NCBI GenBank assembly: GCA_002269645.1
Contig: NIVC01001013.1
Location: forward strand, 315,946 to 379,945
Length of the DNA stretch: 64,000 nt
Source of the DNA: Macrostomum lignano
Taxonomy: Eukaryota
Reading direction: 5' to 3'
Positions 4,069 to 62,172 of the stretch are shown here, piece by piece (position 1 is the stretch's first letter; the number at the start of each line of letters is the position of its first letter). Under the pieces are notes generated by a model that ran no database searches, had not been told where the DNA came from, and saw only the letters and a list, made by a program, of their open reading frames with translations. Position numbers and translations under genes: made by a program.

Positions 4069-7000
4069 TTAGCTATTCATGACTTCATATATTTTAGCTA
4101 CACCAGTGAGTTCTTTTCTGACTCTTTTTTCATTTGTAGCATATCCTATCTTGTGTATTTGATTGCTATTTAAGAGGTATTGACAGAAGTATTTTTTCCT
4201 GATCTCTTCAGTTTGTGGACATTCGGTCAAGTAGTGTAGAATGTCAGAACCATTTCGCGCTCCACACAATTTACATGGTTCTTGAGAAAAAAAGTTGGGT
4301 GTAATCTCGCATTTCAGTTTTAGGAGGGTTGTTAAGAATTTTTTGTTTCTAAATGTACATGGGAAGTAATCTGAAAGGTCGGGCCTGCAGATTTTTTTGT
4401 AGAGATAGGCGTTTTTGTAGAGTTTAATATGTTGCTGATTCTCTAGCTTTTGGCTAAGTTCTCTTTCTCTGTGTATCTTGAGGTGCTTTTTCACTAGGTA
4501 TTTCTCGCTATTAAAGCTTTGGGAAAGTTTATCTTCAGTTAGTGCTTTTAGGTCTATACTTTCTAGTTTCTTTAGTACATTCATTTTCCATGGATTTTTT
4601 TGGCCGGTGCTTGAGTAGAAAATTTCTAGAGTCGTTTGGCAGAGTTTTTTGTGTCTAATCTTCAGCCAGTAGATGAGGTAGGTTTTAGCGATTCGTTGAG
4701 AGATTGGAGTAAGCTCAAGTTCTGATGATATCACACTGTTGCTAGCAAATTTTGGTAGATTGAGGAGATATTTGTAGAATTTCAGCTGAATATTATCAAT
4801 AGCTTTTGTATCAGACATGGTAGCCAGAGGGCCCCAGAGCTCACAACCGTAAGTGATAACGGGGGTAACAAGCGCGTCAAATAGTCTGCGAATGAGTGTG
4901 ATGTCTAGGGACGTATTCTTTACCCTATGGAGTAGGGAAAACATGGCTGTATATCCCTGCTTAGTTTGGTGTTCAATACATTTTTTAAAGCTGTTTTTTG
5001 GTTCAAAAATAATTCCCAGGTATTTAAATTCATTTACTTCTTCTATTTCTTGGTTGTCGTAGTATATTTTTGTAGCAATGCTATCTGTGTCGTTTTTTTG
5101 TCTGGTATTGCCCTGCATAAACTTTGTTTTGCTTGCGTTTACTTTCAAGTAATTTTGTTTGCAGTAATTTTCCATAGTCGTAAATGTGTCTTGAAGTTCG
5201 TCTTTGTTTTTAGCTAGAATGGCTTGATCGTCTGCAAAGAGTAGGATGAGTGGGAAAGCAGATCTCGTAAGAGAGCGCCTAGCGCTAGAGAGTTCCAGAT
5301 ATTCAACAATGTCGTCAATATATAGTTCAAAAAGAATGGTAGAGAGAGGGTTGCCTTGAAGAACACCTTTAGATATTGGGATTGGCTGGGTTTCATCATC
5401 ATCATCATCTTTTTTTAGAATGAAGCAGGCATTTTTATGCATGTTCTTGATAAGTTCCATCATTTGACCTTTAATACCCTGATTATCCGTTTTGCACCAA
5501 AGGGTCGGTTGATTTAAGCTATCGAAGGCTTTTTCATAGTCAACAAATCCAATAAAGAGTTCTTCTTTGTTGTAGATGGATTGGTTTATAATGTTGTAAA
5601 GATTAAAACATTGGTCGATTGTGCTGTGATTGGGCTTGAAACCGTATTGGTATTTTGATATAAGATTGTTTGTGTATGCTAGGTTTTCGAGTCTGGATTT
5701 AATAATTTGGCAAAACAGCTTGCCAAGAATTGGTTGAATGCAGATTCCTCTGTAATTGTTGGGGTCGGCACTGCTGCCTTTGTTTTTATAAATCGGATGA
5801 AGTGTATTTGTTATCCAACTAGTTGGGAAGGTTCCTTGTTTGAGTGCTTCGTTGAAAAGTGAGCATAGGAGGTCAGCAAGTTCGTTCTCGAGGTATTTGA
5901 GTGTTTCTACATATACTTTATCGTGCCCAGGTGCTTTGTCGGTTTTGAGCTTTTTGATATGTTTTATAATTTCTTCTTTGGTGAATGGGGCATTGAAATC
6001 CTCTAAATCAGCCAGGATAGGGTTGTCAAGGTGAAGATCGTATGATAGTCTAATGCTGCTGTCTTGTTCAGTTACAAGATTTTGAAAGTGTATGACAAAT
6101 TTTTCATCAATTGTTACTCTGTTGTTTGAGGGATTTGGTGTTTTTAATAAGTTCCAAAGTTGTTTTGTATCGTTTTGAATAAAGGCCTGGTTGATCATGT
6201 TGTCTGCACAGAGAGTTGTTTCAAATTTCCATGAAGTGAGCTTTTTTTCGTATGCTTTTTTGAGTTGTACTTTGCTTGAGAGGTTGTTGGGAGTAGGGAA
6301 GGTTTTATATCTTCTGCAGGCATGTCTAGCAGCGTTTTTTAAGTCTTTAAGGAAGCGAGGCAGAGTTGAGCATAGTGGGTTCTTTATCTCTACTGTGATG
6401 TTGTTTTGAATTTGTCTAACTTTTCTACTTAATTCATTTATAAAAGCTGGGTTTTGTATGTCTAGATTTGTGATTTTGTCATGCATGTTTTTCAGGTCAT
6501 TTGCGAAGTTATTGATATGTTTTTCTTGTTGCAGGTTGGGTTTATGTGACTTTTTTAGGACTCTGTATCTCGTTTTCGAGTTATTGGTTGCTTGTTTAGT
6601 TTCTGTGATTTCCTCTGTGAATTCACTTGATAAGGAGAGCACTATTTGGTTGTGGTCGCTAAAGTAGGTGTGGTTCTTTACTTTAAAGTCTTCGAGGTGT
6701 TGGAGTAAGCTGGTAGAGACGAAACAGAGATCTATAACAGAGGAACCAGATTTTGAGAGAAAGGTGAATTCACCATTTGTGTCTGATAGTGATCTACCAT
6801 TGATTAGATGCAGGTTGTATGAGTCAGTAATCTGGTTAAGTAGTCTACCATTTTTGCAGTTTTTCTTGTCTTGGCTTTGTCTAGTAAGTGAGATGTTTTT
6901 TGCTCTGGTGGTATATATTGAATTTAAATCTATGTATGAGGTATTGTTTATATGAGCATTGAAGTCTCCAATAAGGAAGATGTTTTCTTCGGAGTGATAA

Positions 7001-7203
7001 GCATCAAGGAGAATTGTTAGCTGTTCCCAATTTTCTTCTTCATAATATTTTGAAGACAGTGGGGGTATATAGGAGTTTATTAAGGTGAATGTTTTGTTTT
7101 TATCCTTTTTGTGTTTAAAATTTAGCGTCAAGAAGTTTTTATAATGTTTGAATGATTCTGTAACATTGTATTGTGTATCTAGTGACTTTTTGTAAGCTGT
7201 CAA
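4069..7203 (-). mobile_element. Non-LTR retrotransposon (LINE) ORF2: APE endonuclease + reverse transcriptase + C-terminal CCHC finger; RTE-X/L1-like
   Basis: 1044-aa ORF with GDFNAH, DLCFVS and SDH (endonuclease), preceded in frame by GRASGG. RT motifs APGHDK, YRGICI, QYGFK, FVDYEKAFDS, KGVLQGNPLS, LLFADD and YLGI. C-terminal CKLC-x8-HYLTEC. An in-frame stop lies just upstream, so the endonuclease N-terminus is damaged. Confidence 0.95.
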
Positions 7204-8954: not shown

Positions 8955-11693
8955 ATGCATCATCTGCAGTGGTTATTGATCCTACTAGTATGCATCGGAG
9001 CCGCTAGCGCAGCGTCAACCGACTGCGCCAACTCTGATCATGCGTGGCGCGTCATCTGGAAAGCATCTGGCAACCAGCTTCAGCTTAATTTGGCTCCGCC
9101 TCTGCTAAAGAAGCAAAACTCGACAGCCGGCCGCCTGATGCCGAAGCGCCTGTTGCTGAAACGCCATTCGTCCTCAGTATCCACGGTAGGGAAGAGCGGC
9201 AAGGTGAGAACCGACCGGTACAAACTGAATTCCAGTAGTTCAATTCAAGCTACGGCAACTGTTGTGCACCCGAAATTCGGCGGTCCCGACCTACTGGCAG
9301 GTCTGGTTCGAATGAACTCGAACGGTAGCCGTCACAGCGTCATCTCGCTGGCTATTCACGGAGCTGCCGGGCGTGGCTTCGCCTGCCAGCTGAATTCAAG
9401 CAGCAAGTCTGCCAAAGAAGTCACCTTGACATCGTCAGGAGGGAGTGACGCTTCAGGCAGCGGCGGAGCAGCCGTGCTGGAGCTTCGCCTGGATCTGGAC
9501 CCGTCGGTGTGGCGTCATTTCTCTTCATCGCCAGACGGTGCACAAGCGGCCGCCACCAGCTACTTCGGTGCCGTATTTGGCATAGTCAACCGGGCTTTGG
9601 CAGCTGTCGGCATCCAGATCCGCTGGGTGCTGGGCCGCTCGAGGGCCTACGCCAGCCTGAAGGCGCCTGGAATTGCCTATTTGAGACAGTTCGGACAGCG
9701 AGTCCCAGCTCTGCAGCTGCTGCTCAGCATGGAGGCTCTGGCCGACTGGCAAAAGGACGATAGGGGCGGCTACGATCACCACATGCTGATTACCCGGGAC
9801 CGGAGCCTCCTGCCGCCGGCCAGCTTGGGCCCGAAGCCCAAGGGGGCCCGCCTGATCGGCCTGTCCTATGTGGCTTCAGCCTGCCAGCCGAACTCTCGGT
9901 CAGTGATCACCGACCTGTATCCGGCCGCCACTGCCAGGCTCATTGCTCACGAGCTTGGTCACGTGCTTGGTGAGTGCCTTGCAAAAAATCCACATACTTC
10001 ACGATGTTGTAACGCAGAAAGTGTCAGGAGAGTCAGCAAGAGTGACAGAGATGCTGATACAGAAAGTGTCAGGAGAGTCAGCAGGAGTGACAGAGATGCT
10101 GATACAGAATGTGTCAGGAGAGACAGAGATGCTGATACAGAAAGTGTCAGGAGAGACAGAGATGCTGATACAGAAAGTGTCAGGAGAGACAGAGATGCTG
10201 ATACAGAAAGTGTCAGAAGAGTCAATAGAGACAGAGATGCTGATACAGAAAGTGTCAGAAGAGTCAATAGAGACAGAGATGCCGATACAGAAAGTGTCAG
10301 GAGAGTCAGTAGGAGAGACAGAGATGCTGATACAGAAAGTGTCAGGAGAGTCAATAGAGACAGAGATGCCGATACAGAAAGTGTCAGGAGAGTCAATAGA
10401 GACAGAGATGCCGATACAGAAAGTGTCAGGAGAGTCAGTAGGAGAGACAGAGATGCCGATACAGAAAGTGTCAGGAGAGTCAATAGAGACAGAGATGCTG
10501 ATACAGAAAGTGTCAGGAGAGTCAGCAGGAGAGACAGAGATGCTGATACAGAAAGTGTCAGGAGAGACAGAGATGCTGATACAGAAAGTGTCAGGAGAGA
10601 CAGAGATGCTGATACAGAATGTGTCAGGAGAGTCAATAGAGACAGAGATGCTGATACAGAAAGTGTCAGAAGAGTCAATAGAGACAGAGATGCCGATACA
10701 GAAAGTGTCAGGAGAGTCAATAGAGACAGAGATGCTGATACAGAAAGTGTCAGGAGAGTCAGCAGGAGAGACAGAGATGCTGATACAGAAAGTGTCAGGA
10801 GAGACAGAGATGCTGATACAGAAAGTGTCAGGAGAGACAGAGATGCTGATACAGAAAGTGTCAGGAGAGACAGAGATGCTGATACAGAAAGTGTCAGGAG
10901 AGTCAGCAGGAGAGACAGAGATGCTGATACAGAAAGTGTCAGGAGAGTCAAGAGAGTCAGAGATGCTGATACAGAAAGTGTCAGGAGAGTCAGCAGGAGA
11001 GACAGAGATGCTGATACAGAAAGTGTCAGGAGAGTCAAGAGAGTCAGAGATGCTGATACAGAAAGTGTCAGGAGAGTCAGCAGGAGAGACAGAGATGCTG
11101 ATACAGAAAGTGTCAGGAGAGTCAAGAGAGACAGAGATGCAAGGAAGCTCGGGGATTTTCCACAAAATTCCGCTTGCTATCTTCCAGGAGCCACAGACTC
11201 GCCGCCAAACAGCAGCAGGGAGGCGAACTACCTGATGGAGAGCGATCAGTCACGTCCCGCCCACCTGTCTCGCCTGTCGCGCCTATTCACATATTCGGCA
11301 GCTTCGCGGAGTCAAATTAAAAAGTTCTTATCCAGCTCGAGAGCCGGATGTCTGCGCAAGCTTAGCAACCCAGCCAGTCAGCTCTGGGTGCCGGAGGGTC
11401 CTGCTGGCTCAGCCGAGGACCAGTGCCGCCACATGCGCCAGCTGGCGTTCGCGGGGCCAACCGCCCACGCCAAGATTCTGTCGCCGCCAAAAACAACCCG
11501 GTACCTCTGCCGGCCTGTGCGGTGCAGCAACGGCAGCCACTCGGCCAGGCTGCTGCTGATGCCCGGCACTCTGTGCATTCCGCGCAATAAGAAAAGCCGT
11601 TGCCAGATGAACATGATCTGCTCCGGGGGGAACAGGGAAATAGTGGAACAGGGAAACAGGGAAACAGGGGGAACAGGGGGAACAGGCAAATAG
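8955..11693 (+). CDS. Secreted ADAMTS/reprolysin (M12B)-like metalloprotease; exons 8955-9969 and 11188-11693
   Basis: Signal peptide MHHLQWLLILLVCIGAASA. YDHHMLITR, IGLSYVASAC, AHELGHVL|GATD, Met-turn NYLMES, then YSAASRSQIKKFL..GCL and an ADAMTS-type Cys-rich region (AEDQC, LCRPVRC, PGTLC). Donor G|GTGAGT at 9970 and acceptor CTTCCAG| at 11187. Confidence 0.85.
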   Translation: MHHLQWLLILLVCIGAASAASTDCANSDHAWRVIWKASGNQLQLNLAPPLLKKQNSTAGRLMPKRLLLKRHSSSVSTVGKSGKVRTDRYKLNSSSSIQATATVVHPKFGGPDLLAGLVRMNSNGSRHSVISLAIHGAAGRGFACQLNSSSKSAKEVTLTSSGGSDASGSGGAAVLELRLDLDPSVWRHFSSSPDGAQAAATSYFGAVFGIVNRALAAVGIQIRWVLGRSRAYASLKAPGIAYLRQFGQRVPALQLLLSMEALADWQKDDRGGYDHHMLITRDRSLLPPASLGPKPKGARLIGLSYVASACQPNSRSVITDLYPAATARLIAHELGHVLGECLAKNPHTSRCCNAESVRRVSKSDRDADTESVRRVSRSDRDADTECVRRDRDADTESVRRDRDADTESVRRDRDADTESVRRVNRDRDADTESVRRVNRDRDADTESVRRVSRRDRDADTESVRRVNRDRDADTESVRRVNRDRDADTESVRRVSRRDRDADTESVRRVNRDRDADTESVRRVSRRDRDADTESVRRDRDADTESVRRDRDADTECVRRVNRDRDADTESVRRVNRDRDADTESVRRVNRDRDADTESVRRVSRRDRDADTESVRRDRDADTESVRRDRDADTESVRRDRDADTESVRRVSRRDRDADTESVRRVKRVRDADTESVRRVSRRDRDADTESVRRVKRVRDADTESVRRVSRRDRDADTESVRRVKRDRDARKLGDFPQNSACYLPGATDSPPNSSREANYLMESDQSRPAHLSRLSRLFTYSAASRSQIKKFLSSSRAGCLRKLSNPASQLWVPEGPAGSAEDQCRHMRQLAFAGPTAHAKILSPPKTTRYLCRPVRCSNGSHSARLLLMPGTLCIPRNKKSRCQMNMICSGGNREIVEQGNRETGGTGGTGK
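10015..11140. repeat. Intronic modular tandem repeat with 33/42/45-bp units (AGAGACAGAGATGCTGATACAGAAAGTGTCAGG +/- AGAGTCAAT or AGAGTCAGCAGG)
   Basis: Direct reading; it fills the 1218-bp intron of the metalloprotease. Confidence 0.95.
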
Positions 11694-16047: not shown

Positions 16048-19000
16048 TTAGCGAGTATCGTCGGTGCCGGCGTGCGAGAAATCGGCGCTGCCCGGCGTGC
16101 CGGCGACGCTGCCGCCGCCGCTTGGCCGCTCTGGCGGCTGCTGCCGCTGCTTCTCATCTAGCAACTCCTGTTGCTGCTGCTGCTGCTGCTGCTGCTGTCG
16201 CTGCTGCTGGTCCTTGTGCTGGTGGTACTTGCGCAGCTCGTTGCGGACAACCTCGGCCACCCGGGACATCAGCCGGTCGTCTTCGCTATCCTGCTCGGCC
16301 AGCGATCTGGAACGGTTGTTGCGCAGGCTGAAGGCCTGGAACAGAAGGAACTGCAGCACCAGCTGCTGGTCGAAGTCGTCGTCGGCGCTCGGCCGGAGGT
16401 CGGGCCGGAGTCGGCCGACAACGAATAGGACGAGGCGGCGAAGGAGGTCCAGCGCGTTGAACGGCGGCGGCAGCGAGGAGCGCGACTGGAACTCCTGGAT
16501 GAGGTCGTGCCGCTCGAACTGCCACAGGGACTGGCTGCGCGAATCGATCTCTTCGACTGTGCGGCTGAACAGGGCGATGATGAGGTTCAGCAGCAGGATC
16601 TCCGTGATGATCACGTACAGCGGCAGGATCACGTAGGGCACCAGGTATCTGGGGAAGAGGCAGATTGAAGCCAAGAGGAATGGCAGATTGAAGCTAGCAG
16701 GAATGGCAGATTGTAGCCAACAGGAATGGCAGATTGTAGTTAACAGGAATGGCAGATTGTAGCTAACAGGAATGGCAGATTGTAGTTAACAGGAATGGCA
16801 GATTGTAGCCAACAGGAATGGCAGATTGTAGCTAACAGGAATGGCAGATTGTAGTTAACAGGAATGGCAGATTGTAGCCAACAGGAATGGCAGATTGTAG
16901 CTAACAGGAATGGCAGATTGTAGTTAACAGGAATGGCAGATTGTAGCTAACAGGAATGGCAGATTGTAACTTGCAGAAATAGCAGATTGTATTCTATAGG
17001 AATAAGAATAGCAGATTGTAACTAACAGGAATGGCAGATTGTAGCTAACAGAAATGGCAGATTGTAGCCAATAGGAATGGAAGATTGTAGCTAACAGGAA
17101 TGGCAGATTGTAGCTAACAGGAATGGCAGATTGTAGCTAACAGGAATGGCAGATTGTAGCCAATAGGAATGGCAGATTGTAGCTAACAGGAATGGCAGAT
17201 TGTAGCTAACAGGAATGGCAGATTGTAGCTAACAGGAATGGCAGATTGTAGCCAATAGGAATGGCAGATTGTAGCTAACAGGAATGGCAGATTGTAGCTA
17301 ACAGGAATGGCAGATTGTAGCTAACAGGAATGGCAGATTGTAGCTAACAGGAATGGCAGATTGTAGCTAACAGAAATGGCGGATCGAAGCTAACAGGAAT
17401 GGCAGGTTGTAGCTAACAGAAATGGCAGATTGTAGCCAATAGGAATGGCAGATTGTAGCTAACAGGAATGGCAGATTGTAGCTAACAGGAATGGCAGATT
17501 GTAGCTAACAGGAATGGCAGATTGTAGCCAATAGGAATGGCAGATTGTAGCTAACAGGAATGGCAGATTGTAGCTAACAGGAATGGCAGATTGTAGCTAA
17601 CAGGAATGGCAGATTGTAGCTAGCAGGAATGGCAGATTGTAGCTAACAGGAATGGCAGATTGTAGCTAACAGGAATGGCAGATTGTAGCTAACAGGAATG
17701 GCAGATTGTAGCTAACAGGAATGGCAGATTGTAGCCAATAGGAATGGCAGATTGTAGCTAACAGGAATGGCAGATTGTAGCTAACAGGAATGGCAGATTG
17801 TAGCTAACAGGAATGGCAGATTGTAGCTAGCAGGAATGGCAGATTGTAGCTAACAGGAATGGCAGATTGTAGCTAGCAGGAATGGCAGATTGTAGCCAAT
17901 AGGAATGGCAGATTGTAGCTAACAGGAATGGCAGATTGTAGCTAACAGGAATGGCAGATTGTAGCTAACAGGAATGGCAGATTGTAGCTAACAGGAATGG
18001 CAGATTGTAGCTAACAGGAATGGCAGATTGTAGCTAACAGGAATGGCAGATTGTAGCTAACAGGAATGGCAGATTGTAGCTAACAGGAATGGCAGATTGT
18101 AGCCAATAGGAATGGCAGATTGTAGCTAACAGGAATGGCAGATTGTAGCTAACAGGAATGGCAGATTGTAGCTAACAGGAATGGCAGATTGTAGCTAGCA
18201 GGAATGGCAGATTGTAGCTAACAGGAATGGCAGATTGTAGCTAACAGGAATGGCAGATTGTAGCTAACAGGAATGGCAGATTGTAGCTAACAGGAATGGC
18301 AGATTGTAGCTAACAGGAATGGCAGATTGTAGCTAACAGGAATGGCAGATTGTAGCTAACAGGAATGGCAGATTGTAGCTAGCAGGAATGGCAGATTGTA
18401 GCTAACAGGAATGGCAGGTTGTAATGAGCAGAAATAGCATATTTTAGCCAACAGGAATGGCAGATTGTAACTAGCAGAAATAGCAGATTGTAGCCAACAG
18501 AAATGGCAGATTGAAGCTAACAGGAATGGCAGATTGTAGCTAGCAGGAATGGCAGATTGTAGCTAACAGGAATGGCAGATTGTAGCTAACAGAAATGGCA
18601 GATTGTAACTAGCAGAAATAGCAGATTATATTCTTTAGGAATGGCAGATTGTAACTAACAGGAATGGCATATTTTAGCCAATAGGAATGGTAGATTGTAA
18701 CTAGCAGAAATAGCAGATTGTAGCCAACAGAAATGGCAGATTGAAGCTGAAAAGGAATGGCAGATTGAAGCTGAAAAGGAATGGCAGATTGTAGCTAACA
18801 GGAATGGCAGATTGTCAATGTCCAACAGCATTACCTGCCAACATGGTGCGGGCAGGACTGGGTATTGTTGAAGACTTTGTTATCAAGGATTTCATTGCAC
18901 CCGTCAGCTCCCATCACGGCATCCAGGCTGTAGTCGCCAACCATGCTGTAGAAGCAGATCCGGAACATGCCCAGCAGGATGTTCGGCACAGTCATCTGTT

Positions 19001-22000
19001 CCGGGTTCCAAGCGTAATAACCGTTGGGAAACAGCAGGCCGTACATGAGCACGCCAAAGGCGAATATGAATATGAATAGGATGAACAGGAATGGGAACAG
19101 GTCCTGGATGATCATTTTGGCCATCATCTTCAGCTTGGGCCCGAGAGTCTCCAGCACAGTTGAGATGTACAACAGCCTGATCCAGTATAGGGAACAGGAT
19201 ATGCCTGCGGGATGATGATGTTGCTGATGAGGCTAAGAGGCTGGCAGTTTACAGCCGGATGGGCTTCATACGCTACTGATTGCAGGCGGTGTATAGTAGT
19301 ATAATGTGTGTGCATGAAAATCTTGAACTCCACATCTCGAAAACACCACAATAGGGTGCTCTTTAACAAACCATTTGTAAACCCTTTCACAACGCCTAAA
19401 ATACTAGCATTCACCTTCATCACAAACCCTAAACTTAATAAACCCTAAACTTTGTGAAACGTAAACTTCATGGACCCTAAACTTCATAAACCCTAAACTT
19501 CATAAACCCTAAACTTCGTAAAACCTAAACTTCATAAAACCTAAACTTCATAAACCCCAAACTTCATAAACCCTAAACTTCATAAACACTAAACTTCATA
19601 AACCCTAAACATCAAAAAACCTAAACTTCATAGACCCTAAACTTCATAAACCCCAAACTAAACCTGAGCTTCACAAGGGTCCCAAATTTCACAGAGCAAT
19701 CAAATTTGCTTAATTGAATACTAGGCGTTGTGAAAGTTGGAATCCAGGCACCCATTTGCAATTGGAAATCCCCAAATTAAAAATCCATTTTCAAAATTTC
19801 CAAATCCCCAAACACTGAAGGATAGGAAGGGAAGACACTGAAGGACCTGGGAAGGAGACACTGAAGGACCAGGGGAGGAGACACTGAAGGACCAGGGGGG
19901 GACACTGAAGGACCAGGGGGAGACACTGAAGGACCAGGGGGAGACACTGAAGGACCCGGGCCGCAGCCCCTCAGGCTCCTCACTTACCCAGAAACAGCCT
20001 GGCCAAGTACCATCCGGGATCATTAAACGACATGGTGAGCCTCTGCTCCACAGTGTCCATGTGTCCGGCAACTTTGCCCATGCGCAAGAAGAATCCAATG
20101 ACCGCGGTGAACAGTGCGGCAATGTCAATGTAGTTCCACTTGCTCCGAAAGTAGTCGCTCAGCCTGGTGTACATGGCGCACTGCATCAGCTCGCCAACCT
20201 CTTCAATGAGGTAGCCGCAGATGATGCAATAAGCCGCAGCCTCGGCCGTGTTGAGGCTGTATTCGAAATCGATGACCAGAACGTACGACAGGAGCATTAG
20301 CAGGCTGGCGTGGGCCAGGGCGTGATACCGGAACTTCACCGCCGGTATGTTGTAGAAGCCGTACAGCAGGCGGAAGAACTGGCGCAGGCGGCGGAGGTGA
20401 GGATTGCGCAACTGCCGCTCCGAGGAGGTCAGGCTGACTTTGGACCCGCCGAGCAGACTGCGCCGCTCCTCCGGCTGGTCGTCAGGGTCTGTCAGGGCCT
20501 GGTAAATAGAGTTGGGCGCTTTTAATGGGCTGGCCAGCTTGATGATGGCTTCCTGGGGATGAAGGTGACGGAGCCTGGGTACCTGGGGATTAAGGTGACG
20601 GAGCCTGGGTACCTGGGGATTAAGGTGACGGAGCCTGGGTACCTGGGGATTAAGGTGACGGAGCCTGGGTACCTGGGGATTAAGGTGACGGAGCCTGGGT
20701 ACCTGGGGATTAAGGTGACGGAGCCTGGGTACCTGGGGATTAAGGTGACGGAGCCTGGGTATCTGAAGATGAACGTGACGAAGCCTGGGTATCTGGGGAT
20801 TAAGGTGACGGAGCCTGGGTATCTGAAGATGAAGGTGACGGAGCCTGGGTATTTGGGGATGAAGGTGACGGAGCCTGGGTATCTGGGGATAGAGCTGGCC
20901 GATACTGGAGAGCTGGGGATGAAGGTGACGGAGCCTGGGTACCTGGAGATGATGATGACGGAGATTGAGCACCTGGGAATGGTGATGACGGAGCCTGGGT
21001 ACCTGGGGATGAAAGTGACGGAGCCTGGGTACCTGGGGGCTGGGGATGGTGATGACGGAGTCTGAGCACCTTGTAGATGGTGGTGGTGACGGAGCCTGGG
21101 TACTTAGGAATGAATGTGACGGAGCCTGGGTACTTGGGGATAGTGACGGAGCCTGGGTACCTGGGGATGGTGACGGCGCCTGGGTACCTGGAGATGGTAG
21201 TGACGGAGCCTGGGTACCTGGGGATGAAGGTGATGACGGAGCCTGAGTACCTGGAGATGAAGATGACGGAGCCTGCATACCTAAAATAGAGGTGGTGAAG
21301 CCTAGATACCTAGGAATCGAGTTAATTAAAATGTAAGATTGCAAGGTGAGCGCCATGACTTAGGCTACCAGAGGGTGCTTGCATTCTTAAATGAACTGCA
21401 GCTGTTAACAAACCTTGGTCCCCACAGCAGTTGTGGCAGTCTTGCCAGAAGGCGTGAACTGCACCTCCACATTCGCCGCCGCAGTTGCCGCCTTGGCGTT
21501 GGCGGCCGCCTCGCACTCGGCCCGCTTGGCGGTGACAAGGAACTCGCAGGTCTCGTCACCGCCGCGACCCCCGCCGCCAGCGCCTCCGGCACCGCCGCCG
21601 CCGGAGTCCAGCGGGCCGCCACGATGCCGCCGCTCCTCGAGCATGCGCTGCTCGTCGAAGTACACCAGCAGCATGGGCACCAGCAGGTTGCCGGGCACCA
21701 TGCCCAGCCAGATGACAGCCTCGCGCAGGCTCGGCCTGATGTTCAACAGGCAGCCGTACCATTTCTTATCCAGGGCCGTCTGGCCGGCGGCTGTCTGCAG
21801 AAACCTGGCCGACTTGTTGTTGGCGGCCAGCTCGATGCAGGAGGCTTCGCCGTACGTCGGCTGCGGCATCAGCAGGTAGTCCACGGTCACCTGGTGAGGA
21901 GACGCAAAATTCGGTGAGGCTTGTCTCTCTGTAAACTAACTGGGTAAAAGGCGGGAGTAACTATCCCTTTGTTTAGGTAATTGAATACCTTTTCATCTAA

Positions 22001-25000
22001 TTAGATACTGTTGCCTATGATGAAAAAAGGATAAAAAACGCTACTTGTATTACTTATATTACTAAACCGCACCTGTTTGCAGTAGGACGTATCCAGCGTG
22101 TACACCCGTTCAACGGTCTCCTGGGCGATGGACTCGCAGCGGGAGGCCAGCAATTCGATTTCCTCATCGTCCAGCGTCAAATCGGGATTCGATAGCAGGC
22201 TGCGCAGCAGGCCAGCGCAGAACAGCGACAGGGGGATGATGTCGAACTGGTCCTGCCTGTCCGGGAGGGATTCAGAGGACCCAGTCCATTACCGATTTTT
22301 ATTCCAATCCAGCACTCGATCTATAGATCCACTCTATGGCCTACTTAATATATGATCTACTCAACTGAAATCACATGTAGAAATCGATAAATAACTACTC
22401 AATCCTAATTTAGAAATCTATAGGTATCTACTCAATCATCATTATTAGAAATCTATAGATATCTACTCAATCCCAAGTTAGAAATCCATAGATATCTACT
22501 CAATCCGAAATTAGAAATCTATAGGTATCTACTCAATCATCATTATTAGAAATCTATAGATATCTACTCAATCCTAATTTAGAAATCAATAGGTATCTAC
22601 TCAATCATCATTATTAGAAATCTATAGATATCTACTCAATCCGAAATTAGAAATCTATAGATATCTACTCAATCCTAATTTAGAAATCTATAGGTATCTA
22701 CTCAATCATCATTATTAGAAATCTATAGATATCTACTCAATCCGAAATTAGAAATCTATAGATATCTACTCAATCCTAATTTAGAAATCTATAGGTATCT
22801 ACTCAATCATCATTATTAGAAATCTATAGATATCTACTCAATCCGAAATTAGAAATCTATAGATATCTACTCAATCCTAATTTAGAAATCTATAGGTATC
22901 TACTCAATCATCATTATTAGAAATCTATAGATATCTACTCAATCCGAAATTAGAAATCTATAGATATCTACTCAATCCGAAATTAGAAATCTATAGGTAT
23001 CTACTCAATCATCATTATTAGAAATCTATAGATATCTACTCAATCCTAATTTAGAAATCTATAGGTATCTACTCAATCATCATTATTAGAAATCTATAGA
23101 TATCTACTCAATCCCAAGTTAGAAATCCATAGATATCTACTCAATCCGAAATTAGAAATCTATAGGTATCTACTCAATCATCATTATTAGAAATCTATAG
23201 ATATCTACTCAATCCTAATTTAGAAATCTATAGGTATCTACTCAATCATCATTATTAGAAATCTATAGATATCTACTCAATCCGAAATTAGAAATCTATA
23301 GATATCTACTCAATCCGAAATTAGAAATCTATAGGTATCTACTCAATCATCATTATTAGAAATCTATAGATATCTACTCAATCCGAAATTAGAAATCTAT
23401 AGATATCTACTCAATCCCAAGTTAGAAATCCATAGATATCTACTCAATCCGAAATTAGAAATCTATAGATATCTACTCAATCCCAAGTTAGAAATCCATA
23501 GATATCTACTCAATCCGAAATTAGAAATCTATAGATATCTACTCAATCCGAAATTAGAAATCTATAGATATCTACTCAACCTCAATTTAGAAATCTATAG
23601 ACATCTACTCAATCCCAATTAAGCAATCTATAGACATCTACTGAATCCACAACATCCGATATAGAATGTAGAGAGTGACTCACAGGATGAGCATCTCAGT
23701 CAGCTGGAACCTGCCGGTGAGCACAGACCACACGGCCAAGGTGTCCATGGGATGGCGCAGGTAGGACACATCGGGGCAGTAGTCAGGCCGGTAGGCCGGC
23801 AGCAGGTGCGCAGAGCACTCGGCTCCATAGTGACTGGCCAGAGCGTCTCGGCGAAGCCGGCCGGCCTGCACGAAGCTCTGGCGGAGGTTCTGCACCAGGC
23901 GGCTGACACCGCGCTCGGGCGTGTGCAGGTAGACGCTGTCCAGACGGGACTCGATCACTTCGGCCACGGCTGTCCAGAGGATGCCGCAGGCTGACAGACG
24001 GCACAGCAGGCCGATGTCTTCGCGCAGCAGGACGTAGCGCAGCACCAGGGCGGCGGTCTTCTCCAGTGCGTCCTCGTTGTTCACCAGAACGTGCGCCAGC
24101 TCGGTCCGGGCCAGGCGGGTGGCGAGATCGCGGAACTCTACCAGGTCCACCTGACAGGGAGAATCCGCATCTTTAATATGAGCCAGAGCCAGTCTTTTGA
24201 TGGGGGAATGCGCTTGATTATGATTATTCACTCATTGTCAGTGCAGTTGTGAGATTCGATAGAGCAGGGGTTGCTAGCTTTTTGAACTTGTGTTGAGGCG
24301 AGGGGCAAGTGGAGAGTGGGAAGAGGGGAGAGGAGACAGAGGAGAGGCGAGAGGAGAGGAGAGGAGAGAAGTGGAGAGAGGAGAGAGGAGAGAGGTGATA
24401 GAGAAGATAGAATCTTGTAAACGCATACCAGAGATCACACTGACCCCTGATCCTATAATTTATAAGACTGAAATCATAGAGTCTGAGCCGAGTGAAAAGC
24501 CGCATATTCCAGCTATTATCGAGGGTTTTCAATAAGAAAAGATCAATATTCAATTAGAAGGTTGCAGGAACACTAAGTGCCTAAATACGTACACACACTC
24601 AAGTGCATACACTCGAGCATGTAGCGTTTATAGTTTAAAACATGGCATAAGTTGAAAATTGCTGTCACAACACTCCGCTGCCTCAATACAACCTGCTATC
24701 AACTTGTATGTCGCTGTGCGAGCGTATGCTGGAGTGCAAACACCTGCTGTGCAGTTAGTTGCCGTGTGCAATGATATACAAATCTAATGTCACTGGAGTC
24801 TGGACCCTGGGACGGCTTCCAATGTAATACTAGTTTGAATGCACAAAACAGTAAAACTTGTTAAAGGTTTAGATACCATTATTTACCATTTTTCAAACAG
24901 TGACAGGCAAATAGTAGCAGTCAAACAGTGGCAGTCAAACAGTGACAGTCAAACAGTGGCAGTCAAACAGTGACAGTCAAACAGTGGCAGTCAAACAGGG

Positions 25001-28000
25001 ACAGTCAAACAGGGACAGTCAAACAGGGACAGTCAAACAGTGACAGGCAAACAGTGACAGTCAAACAGTGACGGTCAAACAGTGGCAGTCAAATAGTGAC
25101 AGTCAGTGACAGTCAGTGACAGTCAAATAGTGGCAGTCAGTGACAGTCAAACAGTGGCAGTCAAACAGTGACAGTCAAACAGTGGCAGTCAAACAGTGAC
25201 AGTCAAACAGTGACAGTCAAACAGTGACAGTCAAACAGTGGCAGTCAAACAGTGACAGTCAAACAGTGGCAGTCAAACAGTGACAGTCAAACAGTGGCAG
25301 TCAAACAGTGACAGTCAAACAGTGGCAGTCAAACAGTGACAGTCAAACAGTGACAGTCAGACAGTGACAGTCAAATGTCATGAACCCCCCCCCCAACCAA
25401 TCCAGCTGCAGCCAATCTGACCTTCTGGTCGGCAACTAGCTGCTCAAGCAGGGCCCGCTGCTCGAACTCGCTCAGCCGCTCGGGCGATTTCACCCGGCAC
25501 ACTCTGTACTCATTGTCCACCGCCTGCAGGAAGCCGAGGAACTGGTGAAAGTCCGGCTCAGACAGCAGCTCCTTGTAGCTCTTGGCGTGGACCGTGCGAG
25601 ACACTTCCCGCGTGTAGAAGGTGGACAGGTCGCTGAGCAGAACTGGGCTGCCCTGCTGCATCACCAGGTCGATGGCTGTCCGGCCATTGTCGGCTGGCAA
25701 GTCGACGAATGCGCCGCGTTCCAGCAGCAGCTTCATGGCCAGGCGGTTCTGATTGGCCACGGCCAGGTGCAGCGGTGTCCGGCCTTCGTGGCCCTGCGCG
25801 TTCAGCGCCGCCTCGTCGCTGCAGCGGAGCAGGGCGAGGATGTGCGGCGACGATTCCTCCAGGATGGCGCGGTGCAACGCCGTGTTGCCCTGACGGTCGC
25901 GGACGGACTGGTCCGCCTGGCAGTCGGCTGGAGAATTTGAGAGTAAGGGAGGATTGCAATTATAACTGAGGCTTGAGACTTGATGCTCAACATAAAGCTG
26001 GATCGTTAGATAGAGGCTGAGGTGCTCACGAAGAAGAGGAGTCTGGGAGCTGGAGGTGGCAAGAGGGTGGTGCTTACGATGAAGAGGAGTCTGGGAGCTA
26101 GAAGTGCCAAGAGGGTGGGTGGTGCTCACGATGAAGAGGAGTCTGGGAGCTAGAAGTGCCAAGAGGGTGGGTGGTGCTCACGATGAAGAGGAGTCTGGGA
26201 GCTAGAAGTGGCAAGAGGGTGGGTGGTGCTCACGATGAAGAGGAGTCTGGGAGCTAGAAGTGCCAAGAGGGTGGGTGGTGCTCACGATGAAGAGGAGTCT
26301 GGGAGCTAGAAGTGCCAAGAGGGTGGGTGGTGCTCACGATGAAGAGGAGTCTGGGAGCTAGAAGTGCCAAGAGGGTGGGTGGTGCTCACGATGAAGAGGA
26401 GTCTGGGAGCTAGAAGTGGCAAGAGGGTGGGTGGTGCTCACGATGAAGAGAAGTCTCCGAGTCTGGGAGCTGGAAGTGGCAGAGGGTGGTGCTCACGATG
26501 AAGAGGAGTCTGGGAGCTGGAAGTGGCAGAGGGTGGTGCTCACGATGAAGAGGAGTCTGGGAGCTGGAAGTGACAGAGGGTGGTGCTCACGATGAAGGGA
26601 GGGTTTCAAGACAGGCAAAGAAAGTTCAGCAGGCCTCACTCAGCAGAGCCTCAAGCACAGAGGTCTTATCCTGAGCGCAAGCCCTGTGCAGTGGATAGTC
26701 TCCCGATGGCAGAGGAACATTTGGATCAGCGCCAAGTGCTTTGAGCTTCAGCAGAACGTTCAGCCGGCCCTCCTCAACTGCGTAATGAAGTGGCGTCATG
26801 CCCTGCTGATTGACTCGGTTGAAATCGTACCTGTTTTGTTTTTGTTTACGTGGATTTCACTGTGCGTAGTAGTGTGCTCAGTTTTGAAAGTGATACAAGA
26901 AAACTTATTTACCGTAAACCGCTCTTAACTCGAAGTAGCACTCGCTCTCTCACTCTCACCCATCACATTCTCACCCATCTCACTCTGACCCGTCTCGCTC
27001 ACTAATCTCTCACCTTCTCACTCTCATTCATTTCACTCACTTATCTCTCACCTTCTCACTCTCACTCATCTCACTCACTTATCTCTCACCTTCTAACTCT
27101 CACTCATTTATCTCTCACCTTCTCACTCTCACTCATCTCACTCACTTATCTCTCACCTTCTCACTCTCATTCATTTATCTCTCACCTTCTCACTCTCACT
27201 CATCTCACTCATTTATCTCTCACCTTCTCACTCTCACTCATCTCACTCACTTATCTCTCACCTTCTCACTCTCACTCATTTATCTCTCACCTTCTCACTC
27301 TCACTCATTTCACTCACTTATCTCTCACCTTCTCACTCTCACTCATTTATCTCTCACCTTCTCACTCTCACTCATCTCACTCACTTATCTCTCACCTTCT
27401 CACTCTCACTCATTTATCTCTCACCTTCTCACTCTCACTCATCTCACTCACTTATCTCTCACCTTCTCACTCTCACTCATTTCACTCACTTATCTCTCAC
27501 CTTTTCACTCTCACTCATTTATCTCTCACCTTCTCACTCTCACTCATCTCACTCACTTATCTCTCACCTTCTCACTCTCACTCATTTATCTCTCACCTTC
27601 TCACTCTCACTCATCTCACTCACTTATCTCTCACCTTCTCACTCTCACTCATCTCACTCACTTATCTCTCACCTTCTCACTCTCACTCATTTATCTCTCA
27701 CCTTCTCACTCTCACTCATCTCACTCACTTATCTCTCACCTTCTCACTCTCACTCATTTATCTCTCACCTTCTCACTCTCACTCATCTCACTCACTTATC
27801 TCTCACCTTCTCACTCTCACTCATTTATCTCTCACCTTCTCACTCTCACTCATTTCACTCACTTATCTCTCACCTTCTCACTCTCACTCATTTATCTCTC
27901 ACCTTCTCACTCTCACTCATCTCACTCACTTATCTCTCACCTTCTAACTCTCACTCATTTATCTCTCACCTTCTCACTCTCACTCATCTCACTCACTTAT

Positions 28001-29861
28001 CTCTCACCTTCTCACTCTCATTCATTTATCTCTCACCTTCTCACTCTCACTCATCTCACTCATTTATCTCTCACCTTCTCACTCTCACTCATCTCACTCA
28101 CTTATCTCTCACCTTCTCACTCTCACTCATTTATCTCTCACCTTCTCACTCTCACTCATTTCACTCACTTATCTCTCACCTTCTCACTCTCACTCATTTA
28201 TCTCTCACCTTCTCACTCTCACTCATCTCACTCACTTATCTCTCACCTTCTCACTCTCACTCATTTATCTCTCACCTTCTCACTCTCACTCATCTCACTC
28301 ACTTATCTCTCACCTTCTCACTCTCACTCATTTCACTCACTTATCTCTCACCTTTTCACTCTCACTCATTTATCTCTCACCTTCTCACTCTCACTCATCT
28401 CACTCACTTATCTCTCACCTTCTCACTCTCACTCATTTATCTCTCACCTTCTCACTCTCACTCATCTCACTCACTTATCTCTCACCTTCTCACTCTCACT
28501 CATCTCACTCACTTATCTCTCACCTTCTCACTCTCACTCATTTATCTCTCACCTTCTCACTCTCACTCATCTCACTCACTTATCTCTCACCTTCTCACTC
28601 TCACTCATTTATCTCTCACCTTCTCACTCTCACTCATCTCACTCACTTATCTCTCACCTTCTCACTCTCACTCATTTATCTCTCACCTTCTCACTCTCAC
28701 TCATTTCACTCACTTATCTCTCACCTTCTCACTCTCACTCATTTATCTCTCACCTTCTCACTCTCACTCATCTCACTCACTTATCTCTCACCTTCTCACT
28801 CTCACTCATTTATCTCTCACCTTCTCACTCTCACTCATCTCACTCACTTATCTCTCACCTTCTCACTCTCACTCATTTCACTCACTTATCTCTCACCTTC
28901 TCACTCTCACTCATTTATCTCTCACCTTCTCACTCTCACTCATCTCACTCACTTATCTCTCACCTTCTCACTCTCACTCATTTATCTCTCACCTTCTCAC
29001 TCTCACTCATCTCACTCACTTATCTCTCACCTTCTCACTCTCACTCATTTATCTCTCACCTTCTCACTCTCACTCATCTCACTCACTTATCTCTCACCTT
29101 CTCACTCTCACTCATCTCACTCACTTATCTCTCACCTTCTCACTCTCACTCATCTCACTCACTTATCTCTCACCTTCTCGCTCTCACTCACTTATCTCTC
29201 ACCTTCTCACTCTCACTCATCTCACTCACTTATCTCTCACCTTCTCGCTCTCACTCACTTATCTCTCACCTTCTCACTCTCACTCATCTCACTCTCACCT
29301 CTCTCACTCTCACCCTTCTCACTCTGACTCATCTCACTCTCAACCCATCTCACTCCATTTTACTCTGACCCAACTCACTATGAGCCTTCGCACTCTCACC
29401 TATCTCACCCTCAACCTTCTCACTCTCATCCATCTTACTCTCACCTACCTCACTTTCATCCATCTCACTTTCACCCATCTCACTTTCCCCCATCTCACTC
29501 TCACCCATCTCACTCTCAATCTCAATCTTAGAACGTACCCGATCTTTTCCAGCCTGTCCAGCACCCAAATCTGATCCTCGGCCGCGGCCAGATCGGCAAT
29601 AGTCCGACCGGACAGTACCGGAGCGTACGGATCGCCGGACACCAGCAGCCTCTCCAACTGGTCAGCATCCCGGCGCCTGTAGGCCTCTAATAGCAGGCTC
29701 TGCTCGGACTCATCAGTTGACTGTTTGCTTCGCTGTTGCAGCAAAGATCTCAGATCCATTAAACCGCTGGACATTGGCTGGTATTGCTGCTGCTGCGGCC
29801 CTGATTCGCCCAAGGTTCGCCTTAGCCGCATCTCCGCATGAGATGACAAGAAGCTGCGCAT
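16048..29861 (-). CDS. TRPM: TRPM-type cation channel with N-terminal ankyrin repeats, ~1227 aa. Exons 29861-29539, 26830-26640, 25927-25422, 24150-23684, 22256-22073, 21890-21414, 20552-19988, 19204-18835, 16648-16048
   Basis: All 8 introns are GT-AG and phase-compatible; the exons sum to 3684 nt = 1228 codons. Ankyrin motifs: GMTPLHYAV, GDYPLHRAC, GNTALHRAI, GRTPLHLAV, GRTAIDLV. TRPM MHR4/pre-S1: HPMDTLAVWSVL, SCIELAA..Q..LDKKWYG, FYNIPAVKF. S3 KWNYID, S4-S5 LGPKLKMM..MIIQD, pore loop with a Cys pair, S6 LLLNLIIALFS, TRP helix WQFERHDLIQEF. Confidence 0.88.
16665..18815. repeat. 23-bp tandem repeat GGAATGGCAGATTGTAGCTAACA, ~90 copies, in TRPM intron 8
   Basis: Direct reading; it fills almost the whole 2186-bp intron. 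Confidence 0.95.
19425..19660. repeat. 16-bp tandem repeat AAACTTCATAAACCCT in TRPM intron 7
   Basis: Direct reading, ~13 copies. Confidence 0.9.
19830..19958. repeat. 21-24-bp tandem repeat GGAGACACTGAAGGACCAGGG next to the TRPM exon 7 donor
   Basis: Direct reading, ~6 copies. Confidence 0.85.
20553..21290. repeat. 30-bp tandem repeat (sense: GTACCCAGGCTCCGTCACCTTAATCCCCAG) in TRPM intron 6
   Basis: Direct reading. The final unit supplies the real acceptor of exon 7. Confidence 0.95.
22360..23640. repeat. 33/35-bp AT-rich tandem repeat GAAATCTATAGATATCTACTCAATCCGAAATTA in TRPM intron 4
   Basis: Direct reading; contains the palindromes TCTATAGA and AGATATCT. Confidence 0.95.
24895..25375. 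repeat. 14-bp tandem repeat CAGTCAAACAGTG(A/G) in TRPM intron 3
   Basis: Direct reading. Confidence 0.95.
26020..26600. repeat. 52-bp tandem repeat GAGGGTGGGTGGTGCTCACGATGAAGAGGAGTCTGGGAGCTAGAAGTGCCAA, ~11 copies, in TRPM intron 2
   Basis: Units start at 26111, 26163 and so on (period 52). Confidence 0.95.
26945..29520. repeat. Essentially G-free (CTCA-rich) satellite with 29/38-bp units and an 851-bp higher-order duplication, in TRPM intron 1
   Basis: Three private variants recur exactly 851 bp apart (27094/27945, 27169/28020, 27501/28352). Confidence 0.95.
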
Positions 29862-31877: not shown

Positions 31878-33983
31878 TCAGACGCTAATATCTTCGCCGA
31901 AGCGGCAAAACTCGCCGACAATGCGCTCCATGTCCTGCTCAGAGTTGGTGTCCTGCGAGCAGACCATTCTCCAGCAGTTGATATTTTTAGAGGCGGCGCA
32001 TTTCTGATAGCCAATCAGCATTGAGCCGTCCAAGGTCATTCGCTTTTTTAGGAGAGGCGCCACAGCGTCCATTTGGCGCCACCAAGAGTCGTCCCGCTTG
32101 CTCCAGTCGGCGGGCTGGCCGCGCAAGGCCGGCGGGATGTACCAGAACAGCACGTTGGTACTCTCCGGCTCGGCAATCAGCTCAAACGAGCCATCGGTCT
32201 TTTGTCGTTGCGCAATCAGATTGGCTAGCTGCTTAGCCAGGGTGAACTTTCGGTCAACCAGATCGCTCAGGCCGGACTTGCCAAGGCCGCGCCACACGGC
32301 CCAGAGTTTCAGCACGTCAACTTTGCGACCGCACTGGATCACCTTGTCGCCAATGTCAAACTGCGGCGGATAGAATTTGTCCTGCTGAAACAGGTAAGCC
32401 GCTTGGGTGCCGTGAGCTCTTTGCAAAGCGCCAGAGTGTCTGGTGAGCAGCAGGCTGCACTGCAGATTGACGCCAAGCATTTTGTGCGGATTCCAAGTCA
32501 GCGAGTCAGCGCGTTGGCAACCATCCAACAGGTGCCGGCGGCTCTCCGACAGGATGGCACTGCCGCCTAGGCAGCCATCGACGTGCAACCAGACGTTAAA
32601 CTCTTGACACACGTTGGCCACCTCCGATATTGGGTCGTAGACGCCTAGCACAGTTGTGCCCGCGGTGGCCACCACCATTAGAGGCTTCTGACCCTATATC
32701 GAATGAAACATCAGAAAAAATGAAAACCACCGTAAAAGTGTTGACAGTCAAACTAAACAGAAATTCAAAAGCAAAAAGCCTTACATTCTCAGTGTCGGAT
32801 TTGATGTGCTCCCTCAAGGCATCAACTTTCATTCGTCCGTGTTCATCGGTTGCAACCTTGACGACCGCGTTCTCTCCGAATCCCATGAAGCTGGCACCTT
32901 TCACCATCGAGTAGTGACTCTGAAAATTGTATTATTATTGAATTGCATCTTTGATAGATACGCAGAGCCTTTCAAACAGAACTAACTTCGAGCGCGAACA
33001 CACCTCCATTGACACGTAGATCTTCGCCGGCGGCATAGCAGCGAGACCGAGCCGTCTGGCGTCGGGGAATACAGCCGATTTAGCCAGACTGATGGCGTAC
33101 ATGTTACCAATTGAACCGCCCGGAGTGCAGACGCCTTCGCCATTTTTGAAGCCAAATAATTCCAAGAATTGCTGCATTGCTAGACGCTCCATCACAGTGA
33201 ACACTGGAGCAACTTCGTAAGTGTAGCTGGTGTGTAAAGTAGTTTTTTAGTAGTTAGTTAGACTAAGAAAATATATAGGACGTGAACAGGACGATTTGAT
33301 TAACATTTACAGGCACCCGTGGGATTAATAGCCTAGCTTCTATTTATTTTACTTGCTTCGGTATTCAAAGCAGCATGTGGAATAAGTTGGATGACATCAC
33401 CGAAAAGCTTCCTTTGAGAGAGTCCCTTTGACCTACTCGTGGACCCACGGGGTCTAGACTAGCCTAAACTCGCTACCGTTGATGTTATAATAAGCTAAAA
33501 AGAGTTTAAGAAAGTAAACAAGTCCGCTTACATGCTCGCATTGATGGCGTCAGTTAGCAAAGATCCAACAACGGACTCTTCGTGAACGCGACCGAAAAGC
33601 TGGTTATAGAAGCGCGGATGGTTGGACGTGACGCTAAGGTCGTAGACTGTCTTCAGATTGTCAAGCAGGACGTCCTCGGGCACGGGCTTGTCCGGGAGGC
33701 CCAGCATCTCGGCGTACTCGGACATCAGGCTGTCCGGCGATATAAATTTTACAATTGGTCTGAAAGGCAAGTGGATCGGTTGTTGGTCAAACTCGTACCG
33801 CTGCGAAGTAACTAGCAGGTGTACAACGCTGCAAAAAAATTCTGAAACTCACCTGTCTTTATCCTTCTTGAAGCTCCAGTCTGCTTCATCAAGAAAGTCC
33901 ACGATACGCCTTAGCAAGCTGCGACTGGAGGCCGCTTCCGTCCCATTGACGCCGCTGTTGTTTGAAGCTTCAGTTGAAGACAT
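31878..33983 (-). CDS. Group II PLP-dependent decarboxylase, GAD/CSAD/GADL1/aspartate-decarboxylase family (CSAD/ADC-like), ~510 aa. Exons 33983-33853, 33759-33532, 33226-33004, 32919-32785, 32693-31878
   Basis: HPRFYNQLF, YTYEVAPVF, PGGSIGNMYA, SHYS, VATAGTTVLG.YDP, WLHVD, PLP lysine WNPHKM, IQCGRKVD. GT-AG introns are phase-compatible; total 1533 nt. Confidence 0.93.
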
Positions 33984-62020: not shown

Positions 62021-62172
62021 GGCCAAGTGCTGCCCATGCAGCAATTTTCATTGTACATGGTTGATCATTGAAAGTCAGCTTTATGTGTAACATATACCAT
62101 GGAACTTTTAATGCAATATTGATTTGCTATTGAATATCAGGGCTTGCATGGGTGGAGAAGAAAATTCAGGAT

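Follow-up and report, generated by a model that had tools for sequence, protein, structure and literature searches.

The stretch analyzed here, called the window below, comprises 64,000 nucleotides of the genome of the free-living flatworm Macrostomum lignano (GenBank assembly GCA_002269645.1, contig NIVC01001013.1, positions 315,946 to 379,945). On its minus strand, from window position 29861 to 16048, lies a gene for a putative TRPM-type ion channel with ankyrin repeats in its amino terminal part. Nine exons, with splice sites placed from the sequence, join into one open reading frame (ORF) of 1227 amino acids (aa). All of the introns are GT..AG, the exon phases run 2,1,0,2,0,0,1,2, and the guanine plus cytosine fraction of the exons is 0.51-0.68, with introns between them that are mostly tandem repeats (Table 1). 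The exons, phases and product given by the original prediction, which described the locus as an ankyrin-TRPM chimera, were reproduced exactly, and only the acceptor of exon 7 differs from the RNA-seq-based model. That model is the GenBank protein PAA73423.1 (BOX15_Mlig029514g1, M. lignano, 1209 aa, "hypothetical protein"), which is the same protein except that exon 7 begins at 20498 instead of 20552, 54 nt downstream, leaving it 18 aa shorter. Both acceptors are in frame, the upstream of the two bordering a repeat array whose units each carry a CCCCAG/G acceptor-like site. We conclude that it is highly probable that one transcribed gene of nine exons occupies the locus and that its product belongs to the flatworm "TRPM-like" clade, whose characterized member is the schistosome channel TRPM-MCLZ.

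The ankyrin and channel exons meet at the junction of exons 3 and 4, which reads as had been claimed: exon 3 ends in phase 0 (..GACCAGAAG, followed by gtcaga) and exon 4 starts in phase 0 (..ccctgtcag, followed by GTGGACCTG), giving ADQK and then VDLVEF in the protein. The GenBank annotation of the assembly was derived from a genome-guided RNA-seq transcriptome in which transcript ends were set by trans-splicing and poly(A) reads (PMC5730564), and because it contains both sets of exons, we take them to be joined in one transcript. It could be argued that exons 1-3 and exons 4-9 are two adjacent genes wrongly joined and that the chimera is an artifact of prediction, since intron 3 (1.27 kb) is repeat-rich and since spliced-leader trans-splicing and polycistronic precursors in M. 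lignano can make neighbors look joined (PMC5730564). However, the RNA-seq-based model, whose transcript ends follow trans-splice and poly(A) sites, unites the two sets rather than assigning them to separate transcripts, and no in-frame ATG occurs near the start of exon 4. Furthermore, the linker that spans the junction aligns unbroken with the paralog P0121 at 50% identity, the same domain order is found at ten or more other M. lignano loci and in several parasitic-flatworm genes, and the Schistosoma mansoni channel of the same layout, Sm.TRPM-MCLZ (Smp_333650), was obtained by amplification of cDNA from adult worms and could be expressed in HEK293 cells (PMC10788528). Two separate genes are therefore extremely improbable.

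A Pfam scan of the whole protein placed five Ank families at aa ~100-250 (E 4e-22 to 6e-16), the TRPM2-like domain PF25508 at aa 422-588 (E 3.5e-10, above the curated cut-off) and Ion_trans at aa 815-1066, and it returned no LSDAT/SLOG, Nudix or kinase domain. A jackhmmer search with a SLOG probe likewise gave no match in the channel protein. Hidden SLOG exons were sought by tblastn in the introns, upstream and across the whole 64-kb window, using as probes 69 segments of canonical TRPMs, M. lignano's own included, and none were found. The best match (E 0.006) is antisense to exon 3 and is therefore noise, and as a positive control a full-length canonical TRPM recovered exons 8 and 9. The ankyrin repeats stand where the SLOG/MHR1-2 region of a TRPM normally sits. 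The scan also agrees with the predicted absence of NUDT9-H and kinase domains, and the predicted poly-Q tail is encoded in exon 9.

An AlphaFold2 (AF2) model built from a 17-sequence family alignment reached a mean predicted local distance difference test score (pLDDT) of 76 and a predicted template modeling score (pTM) of 0.68; from this model onward, residue numbers are those of the 1209-aa GenBank isoform. Seven evenly spaced helix pairs at aa 50-283 (pLDDT 85-92) form the ankyrin domain, followed by a helical region (aa 289-460), MHR4 (aa 478-647), a disordered Gly/Ala insert (aa 649-746, pLDDT < 50), and the transmembrane (TM) core and then the TRP helix (aa 1041-1065). The ankyrin repeats that had been assigned to exons 1-3 are thus seen both in the Pfam families and in the model, at about seven repeats. 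In a Foldseek search the full model matched TRPM2, 4, 3, 5 and 8 as well as NOMPC, the latter being the second-best full-length fold match. When the post-ankyrin part was compared with PDB sequences, all 60 of the listed matches were TRPM (3, 2, 8, 1, 5, 4, 7; best E 4e-38). The core motifs that had been named were all located in the sequence, including pre-S1 (FYNIPAVKF), S3 (WNYID), the S4-S5 linker (LGPKL), a pore-loop Cys pair and the TRP helix (LWQFER). At the level of its sequence, then, the protein has every element of a TRPM-type pore subunit.

Sequence homology to canonical TRPMs is firm from aa ~420-449 (MHR4) onward rather than from the beginning of exon 4. Profile-profile alignment (hhalign) against an alignment of SLOG-type TRPMs gave 100% probability over aa 449-1106, and neither aa 1-262 nor aa 262-460 had a significant match to the same profile. 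A profile of aa 262-650 matched TRPM2 MHR4 (residues 602-774) with E 9e-13. With TRPM5 alone the match began earlier, at profile position 80, corresponding to aa 341, where exon 4 starts; the whole-sequence E is ~1e-4 in this case, and the score comes mostly from the MHR4 part. When aa 262-650 were modeled on their own with AF2 (pLDDT 80, pTM 0.80), all of the top 50 PDB fold matches were TRPMs, with 290-380 of 389 columns aligned and E 2.6e-4 to 2e-2. Exon 4 had been read as carrying MHR3/4: the MHR4 half of this claim stands on PF25508 and hhalign and is certain, and an MHR3 equivalent that starts near the exon 3/4 boundary is plausible, with weak support from the TRPM5 profile and the fold matches and a negative result from hhalign.

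Channels of the same architecture, which the original prediction had proposed to look for, are present elsewhere in M. lignano, in trematodes and in a cestode. An exhaustive HMMER search recovered one 99%-identical fragment and many M. lignano relatives with ankyrins plus channel at 30-50% identity; a word-indexed protein search had missed paralogs at 50% identity in its own collection, and the exhaustive search of representatives recovered them. Architecture was checked by Pfam scans and by jackhmmer, with Ank, SLOG, MHR and TM regions as probes. Channels with ankyrins only, that is without SLOG, make up 11 or more clusters (50% identity) in M. lignano (P0121-P0126, P0128-P0130, P0138, P0148) and occur in Opisthorchis viverrini, O. 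felineus, Dicrocoelium dendriticum and Schistocephalus solidus (UniProt "TRPM7"), as well as among unnamed metagenome, Logan and MetaClust entries. Fasciolopsis buski (GenBank "TRPM7") and the monogenean Protopolystoma xenopodis fall in the same group in the channel tree, both as short fragments placed by the channel part alone. The ankyrin-only architecture is therefore conserved across flatworm classes. In two O. viverrini models (P0299, P0127), two complete channel modules stand in tandem behind one ankyrin region.

A neighbor-joining tree was built from 586 columns covering MHR4 and the TM region, with TRPN as outgroup. In that tree the ankyrin-only proteins fall into a single clade, supported by a bootstrap of 73, or 50 with the TM region alone. 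Within it, the Macrostomum subclade has a bootstrap of 96 and a subclade of neodermatan and unnamed sequences one of 97. The channel core is of the TRPM type and lies away from the TRPN outgroup, so that a placement in TRPC or TRPA, which would have spoken against the prediction, was not borne out. TRPC, TRPA, TRPN and TRPV identities were ruled out on the 60 listed PDB sequence matches, all of them TRPM, and the distance of the TRPN outgroup. Also ruled out was a TRPS (soromelastatin) identity: TRPS is defined by SLOG and a carboxy terminal NUDT9-H without ankyrin repeats (PMC7306681), and the window protein has ankyrins and neither SLOG nor Nudix.

We considered whether Macrostomum and the parasitic flatworms could have gained their ankyrins independently, with the likeness to TRPM-MCLZ being convergence. 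The modest bootstrap of the whole clade, a full-length identity of only 23-24% between the Macrostomum and neodermatan subclades, and nine exons here against a published three would all be compatible with that history. Against it, a post-ankyrin linker motif (F..FL.FL.AVDNEY) is common to both subclades, with L305 and D309 at least 90% conserved in Macrostomum and neodermatan members; both subclades have an S1 H-x3-H that canonical TRPMs lack; and domain order and the size of the ankyrin array are equal. We therefore regard convergence as quite improbable and the ankyrin-only channels as probably one lineage.

How this lineage came by its architecture is a separate question. Two flatworm TRPMs have Ank_2 and LSDAT_euk together with the TRPM2-like domain and Ion_trans, namely PAA85706.1 of M. 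lignano (P0152) and KAG5447154.1 of Clonorchis sinensis (P0143). In the tree they group with the SLOG-type flatworm TRPMs and not with the ankyrin-only clade, and they are possible intermediates between it and canonical TRPMs. We favor, without strong evidence, a flatworm TRPM that gained amino terminal ankyrins and later lost SLOG, an order of events that agrees with the existence of flatworm TRPMs with both domains. The clade could instead never have had SLOG, being an early branch sister to the SLOG-bearing TRPMs (perhaps including TRPS) that kept ancestral ankyrins, in which case no swap took place. When the tree is rooted with TRPN, the ankyrin-only clade indeed falls outside all sampled SLOG-bearing TRPMs, Rohr et al. 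put TRPM-MCLZ "next to" other TRPMs, and MHR3 is described in the literature as ankyrin-like, so that ankyrins continuing directly into MHR3 might be the primitive state. However, all of the named members are flatworms, fast-evolving and prone to long-branch attraction toward the outgroup, and the trees are neighbor-joining only and contain no labeled TRPS. Choanoflagellate TRPMs already have SLOG, and a relic found only in flatworms would need losses in all other animal lineages. The flatworm TRPMs with both domains fit a history in which ankyrins came first and SLOG was lost later. An early branch without SLOG is thus unlikely, and gain followed by loss stays our tentatively preferred account.

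Several publications bear on the identity of the gene. Sm.TRPM-MCLZ is a Ca2+-conducting channel that (S)-meclonazepam opens via a pocket in S1-S4 (PMC10788528), and it lacks the NH2-terminal MHR1/2 or SLOG and has ankyrin-type modules there instead (PMC11731825). The architecture has been described for all parasitic flatworms as a "TRPM-like" clade (PMC10788528, PMC11731825, PMC12861061), the name having been proposed for the amino terminal ankyrins, and the channel exon is duplicated in Opisthorchis, Clonorchis and Paragonimus (PMC12861061). The original prediction had presented the gene as a previously unrecognized, domain-swapped TRP subtype, and this did not hold, since the same architecture had already been described in a known clade by the TRPM-MCLZ papers. 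The premise that canonical TRPMs have MHR1-4 without ankyrins is what broad surveys state, with ankyrins absent from TRPM and TRPS (PMC7306681) and MHR1-4, including the MHR1/2 SLOG, in all TRPM/TRPS members (PMC13143021), and the flatworm TRPM-like clade is an exception to it. The decapod "TRPMc" had also been considered as an ankyrin-TRPM, and this lead was dropped as the papers give no architecture. The TRPM-MCLZ papers name no Macrostomum or free-living flatworm for the clade, and the papers that join Macrostomum with TRPM have TRPM-PZQ or TRPV as their subject. That a free-living flatworm has the TRPM-like clade, and in at least 11 paralog groups, seems not to have been described.

The neodermatan subclade of our tree is very probably TRPM-MCLZ, because its two Opisthorchis channel modules and the F/Y/H pattern in S4 match the publications. 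With TRPM-MCLZ and its orthologs the window protein shares amino terminal ankyrins in place of MHR1/2-SLOG, a post-ankyrin linker, a TRPM-type S1-S6 core with the pocket residues S1 H..H, S2 Y/E and S4 R, the TRP helix, a short carboxy terminus without an enzyme domain, and membership in one clade. It differs in coming from a free-living macrostomorph, within a Macrostomum-specific subclade of at least 11 paralog groups, in its nine exons compared with the published three, in a full-length identity of ~24%, and in its Gly/Ala insert and poly-Q tail. Canonical TRPMs (2, 3, 4, 5, 8) have in common with it MHR4, pre-S1, S1-S6, the pore-loop cysteines and the TRP helix; in contrast to them, it has no SLOG/MHR1-2, Nudix or kinase, an MHR3 barely recognizable by sequence and seven amino terminal ankyrins. 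TRPN/NOMPC, TRPA, TRPC and TRPV also have an amino terminal ankyrin array before a six-helix TRP channel, but the channel core and juxtamembrane cytoplasmic domain of the window protein are of the TRPM type. The flatworm TRPMs with both ankyrins and SLOG are likewise flatworm TRPM relatives with amino terminal ankyrins, and they differ in retaining LSDAT_euk and the full TRPM2-like domain.

Some observations weigh against membership in the TRPM-MCLZ group. The equation of the neodermatan subclade with TRPM-MCLZ rests on indirect marks, with Smp_333650 outside the sampled sequences; when it was sought by its published residue numbering among the retrieved proteins, it was not found. These marks are the "TRPM7"-type names, the two Opisthorchis channel modules, which resemble the published exon-3 duplication, and the S4 position, where the cestode has Phe and Dicrocoelium has Tyr, in agreement with the published F/Y/H variation. 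The trees are by neighbor-joining only, and the support of the whole ankyrin-only clade is moderate, at 50 (TM alone) to 73 (with MHR4). The TRP-helix pocket residue is His, where Y1117 of the schistosome channel is Tyr. Finally, because the Macrostomum genes form their own subclade (96), the window gene is not a 1:1 ortholog of TRPM-MCLZ but at best a co-ortholog or paralog.

Apart from this His, the pocket residues of the schistosome channel (H827, H831, Y864, E868, R943, Y1117) are present, five of six, with equal S1-S2 spacing. Three residues past the S4 Arg stands a Tyr, as in species of low sensitivity, and together with the TRP-helix His it suggests that the channel would respond poorly to meclonazepam itself. 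The S2 glutamates and the S3 W-N-x-x-D are presumably the positions that bind Ca2+ in the structures of TRPM2/4/5/8. By analogy with Sm.TRPM-MCLZ and the solved TRPMs, the protein may form a tetrameric, Ca2+-permeable, non-selective cation channel whose gating would start in the ligand cavity between the base of S1-S4 and the TRP helix. Each subunit begins with a short disordered stretch, followed by the array of about seven ankyrins, the linker, an MHR3/4-like helical domain and the disordered Gly/Ala insert, and continues with a TRPM-type S1-S4 voltage-sensor-like domain, S5-pore-S6 with the Cys pair, the TRP helix, carboxy terminal helices and poly-Q. The ADP-ribose route of TRPM2 would be closed, because there is neither a SLOG nor a NUDT9-H site, and the ankyrin array may serve as a docking surface for proteins or ligands instead.

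Numerous blocks of the M. lignano assembly share 95% identity or more, and a near-identical copy of this gene exists (PAA53976.1, P0275), which differs from PAA73423.1 by five substitutions and a shorter tail. One might therefore ask whether, in a genome with such recent duplications, the locus is a copy in decay that encodes no working channel. Nonetheless, the 3.7-kb frame is uninterrupted in all nine exons, the splice sites are canonical, the residues invariant in the family are all retained, including the S2 glutamates and the S3 W-N-x-x-D, and the locus is in the transcript-based annotation. We judge decay to be very improbable and retain the reading of a single transcribed channel gene.

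The introns carry long arrays such as a 23-bp unit repeated 93 times in intron 8 and a 33-bp unit repeated 38 times in intron 4, in agreement with the 15% simple and tandem repeats reported for the M. lignano genome. The 30-bp array of intron 6 is in frame with exon 7 and yields a long ORF (Table 1); an older UniProt model, A0A1I8HMA3 (P0122), reads this repeat as protein (VPRLRHLNPQ...), which is an annotation artifact. Elsewhere in the window, the nearest upstream coding block is a pyridoxal-dependent (PLP) decarboxylase exon on the same strand, ~2 kb from the channel ATG. The remaining features are several exons of an acyl-CoA synthetase-type gene, an intact non-LTR (long terminal repeat) retrotransposon ORF in an AT-rich stretch, and a long ORF that has a signal-peptide-like start and a weak metalloprotease match and runs into a long repeat array.

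Table 1. Exons of the channel gene and other features of the window (positions are those of the window).
Feature	Position	Strand	Content	Phase at end	Further evidence
Exon 1	29861-29539	-	ATG at 29861; disordered aa 1-49 and ankyrin repeats 1-2	2	Donor GTACGT; matches PAA73423.1 exactly; AF2 helix pairs 50-62/66-75 and 88-94/98-106
Exon 2	26830-26640	-	Ankyrin repeats 3-4, aa 108-171	1	Pfam Ank, Ank_2, Ank_3, Ank_4, Ank_5, E 1e-8 to 1e-11; AF2 helix pairs 121-139, 154-173
Exon 3	25927-25422	-	Ankyrin repeats 5-7 (aa 172-~283) and post-ankyrin linker (aa ~289-340)	0	
Exon 4	24150-23684	-	Helical MHR3-like region and start of MHR4, aa 341-495	2	PF25508 from aa 422; TRPM5 profile match from aa 341; folds of TRPM MHR3/4
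Exon 5	22256-22073	-	MHR4, aa 496-557	0	
Exon 6	21890-21414	-	End of MHR4 with conserved W601, then disordered Gly/Ala-rich insert; aa 558-716	0	
Exon 7	20552-19988	-	Pre-S1 (FYNIPAVKF), S1 to start of S4	1	S1 HxxxH, S2 Y..EE, S3 WNYID
Exon 8	19204-18835	-	S4, S4-S5 linker LGPKL, S5, pore helix, pore loop with Cys pair	2	tblastn match with canonical M. lignano TRPM at 19187-18810
Exon 9	16648-16048	-	S6, TRP helix (LWQFERHDLIQEF), carboxy terminal helices, poly-Q tail, stop codon		
Intronic tandem repeats	16659-18815, 20552-21282, 22378-23648, 24893-25375, 26021-26601, 26948-29518		Fill the larger part of most introns		
Intron-6 repeat ORF	19980-21356	-	458-aa ORF, repeat array in frame with exon 7		
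Retrotransposon ORF	4069-7203	-	1044 aa, endonuclease and reverse transcriptase		
Long ORF	8955-11693	+	Reprolysin-type metalloprotease match (HELGHVLG)		Pfam E 3e-4, just under curated cut-off
PLP decarboxylase exon	31878-32678	-	Pyridoxal-dependent decarboxylase		Pfam E 3e-53
Acyl-CoA synthetase-type gene	53491-62044	-	Several exons, AMP-binding and AMP-binding_C		

The window gene is an uncharacterized member of the published TRPM-like kind that had already been deposited as a hypothetical protein, and the design itself, with ankyrins instead of SLOG, was described in the TRPM-MCLZ papers of 2023 to 2026. The flatworm TRPM-like clade is nevertheless an exception that the broad surveys of TRPM and TRPS overlooked (PMC7306681, PMC13143021). 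Its presence in free-living M. lignano means that the clade dates to before parasitism, and it makes this worm a tractable free-living system in which to study the stimuli of these channels and the function of the ankyrin domain. A wider proposal, which we advance tentatively and consider rather doubtful as a whole, is that the ankyrin-only TRPM-like lineage is platyhelminth-wide, at least as old as the split between Macrostomorpha and other rhabditophorans, and sister to all SLOG-bearing TRPMs, maybe with ancestral ankyrins, with at least 11 paralog groups in M. lignano and apparently far fewer in parasites, whose copies were not counted. If this is true, the natural role of a family known until now only as an anthelmintic target could be modeled in a transgenic, regenerating laboratory flatworm.

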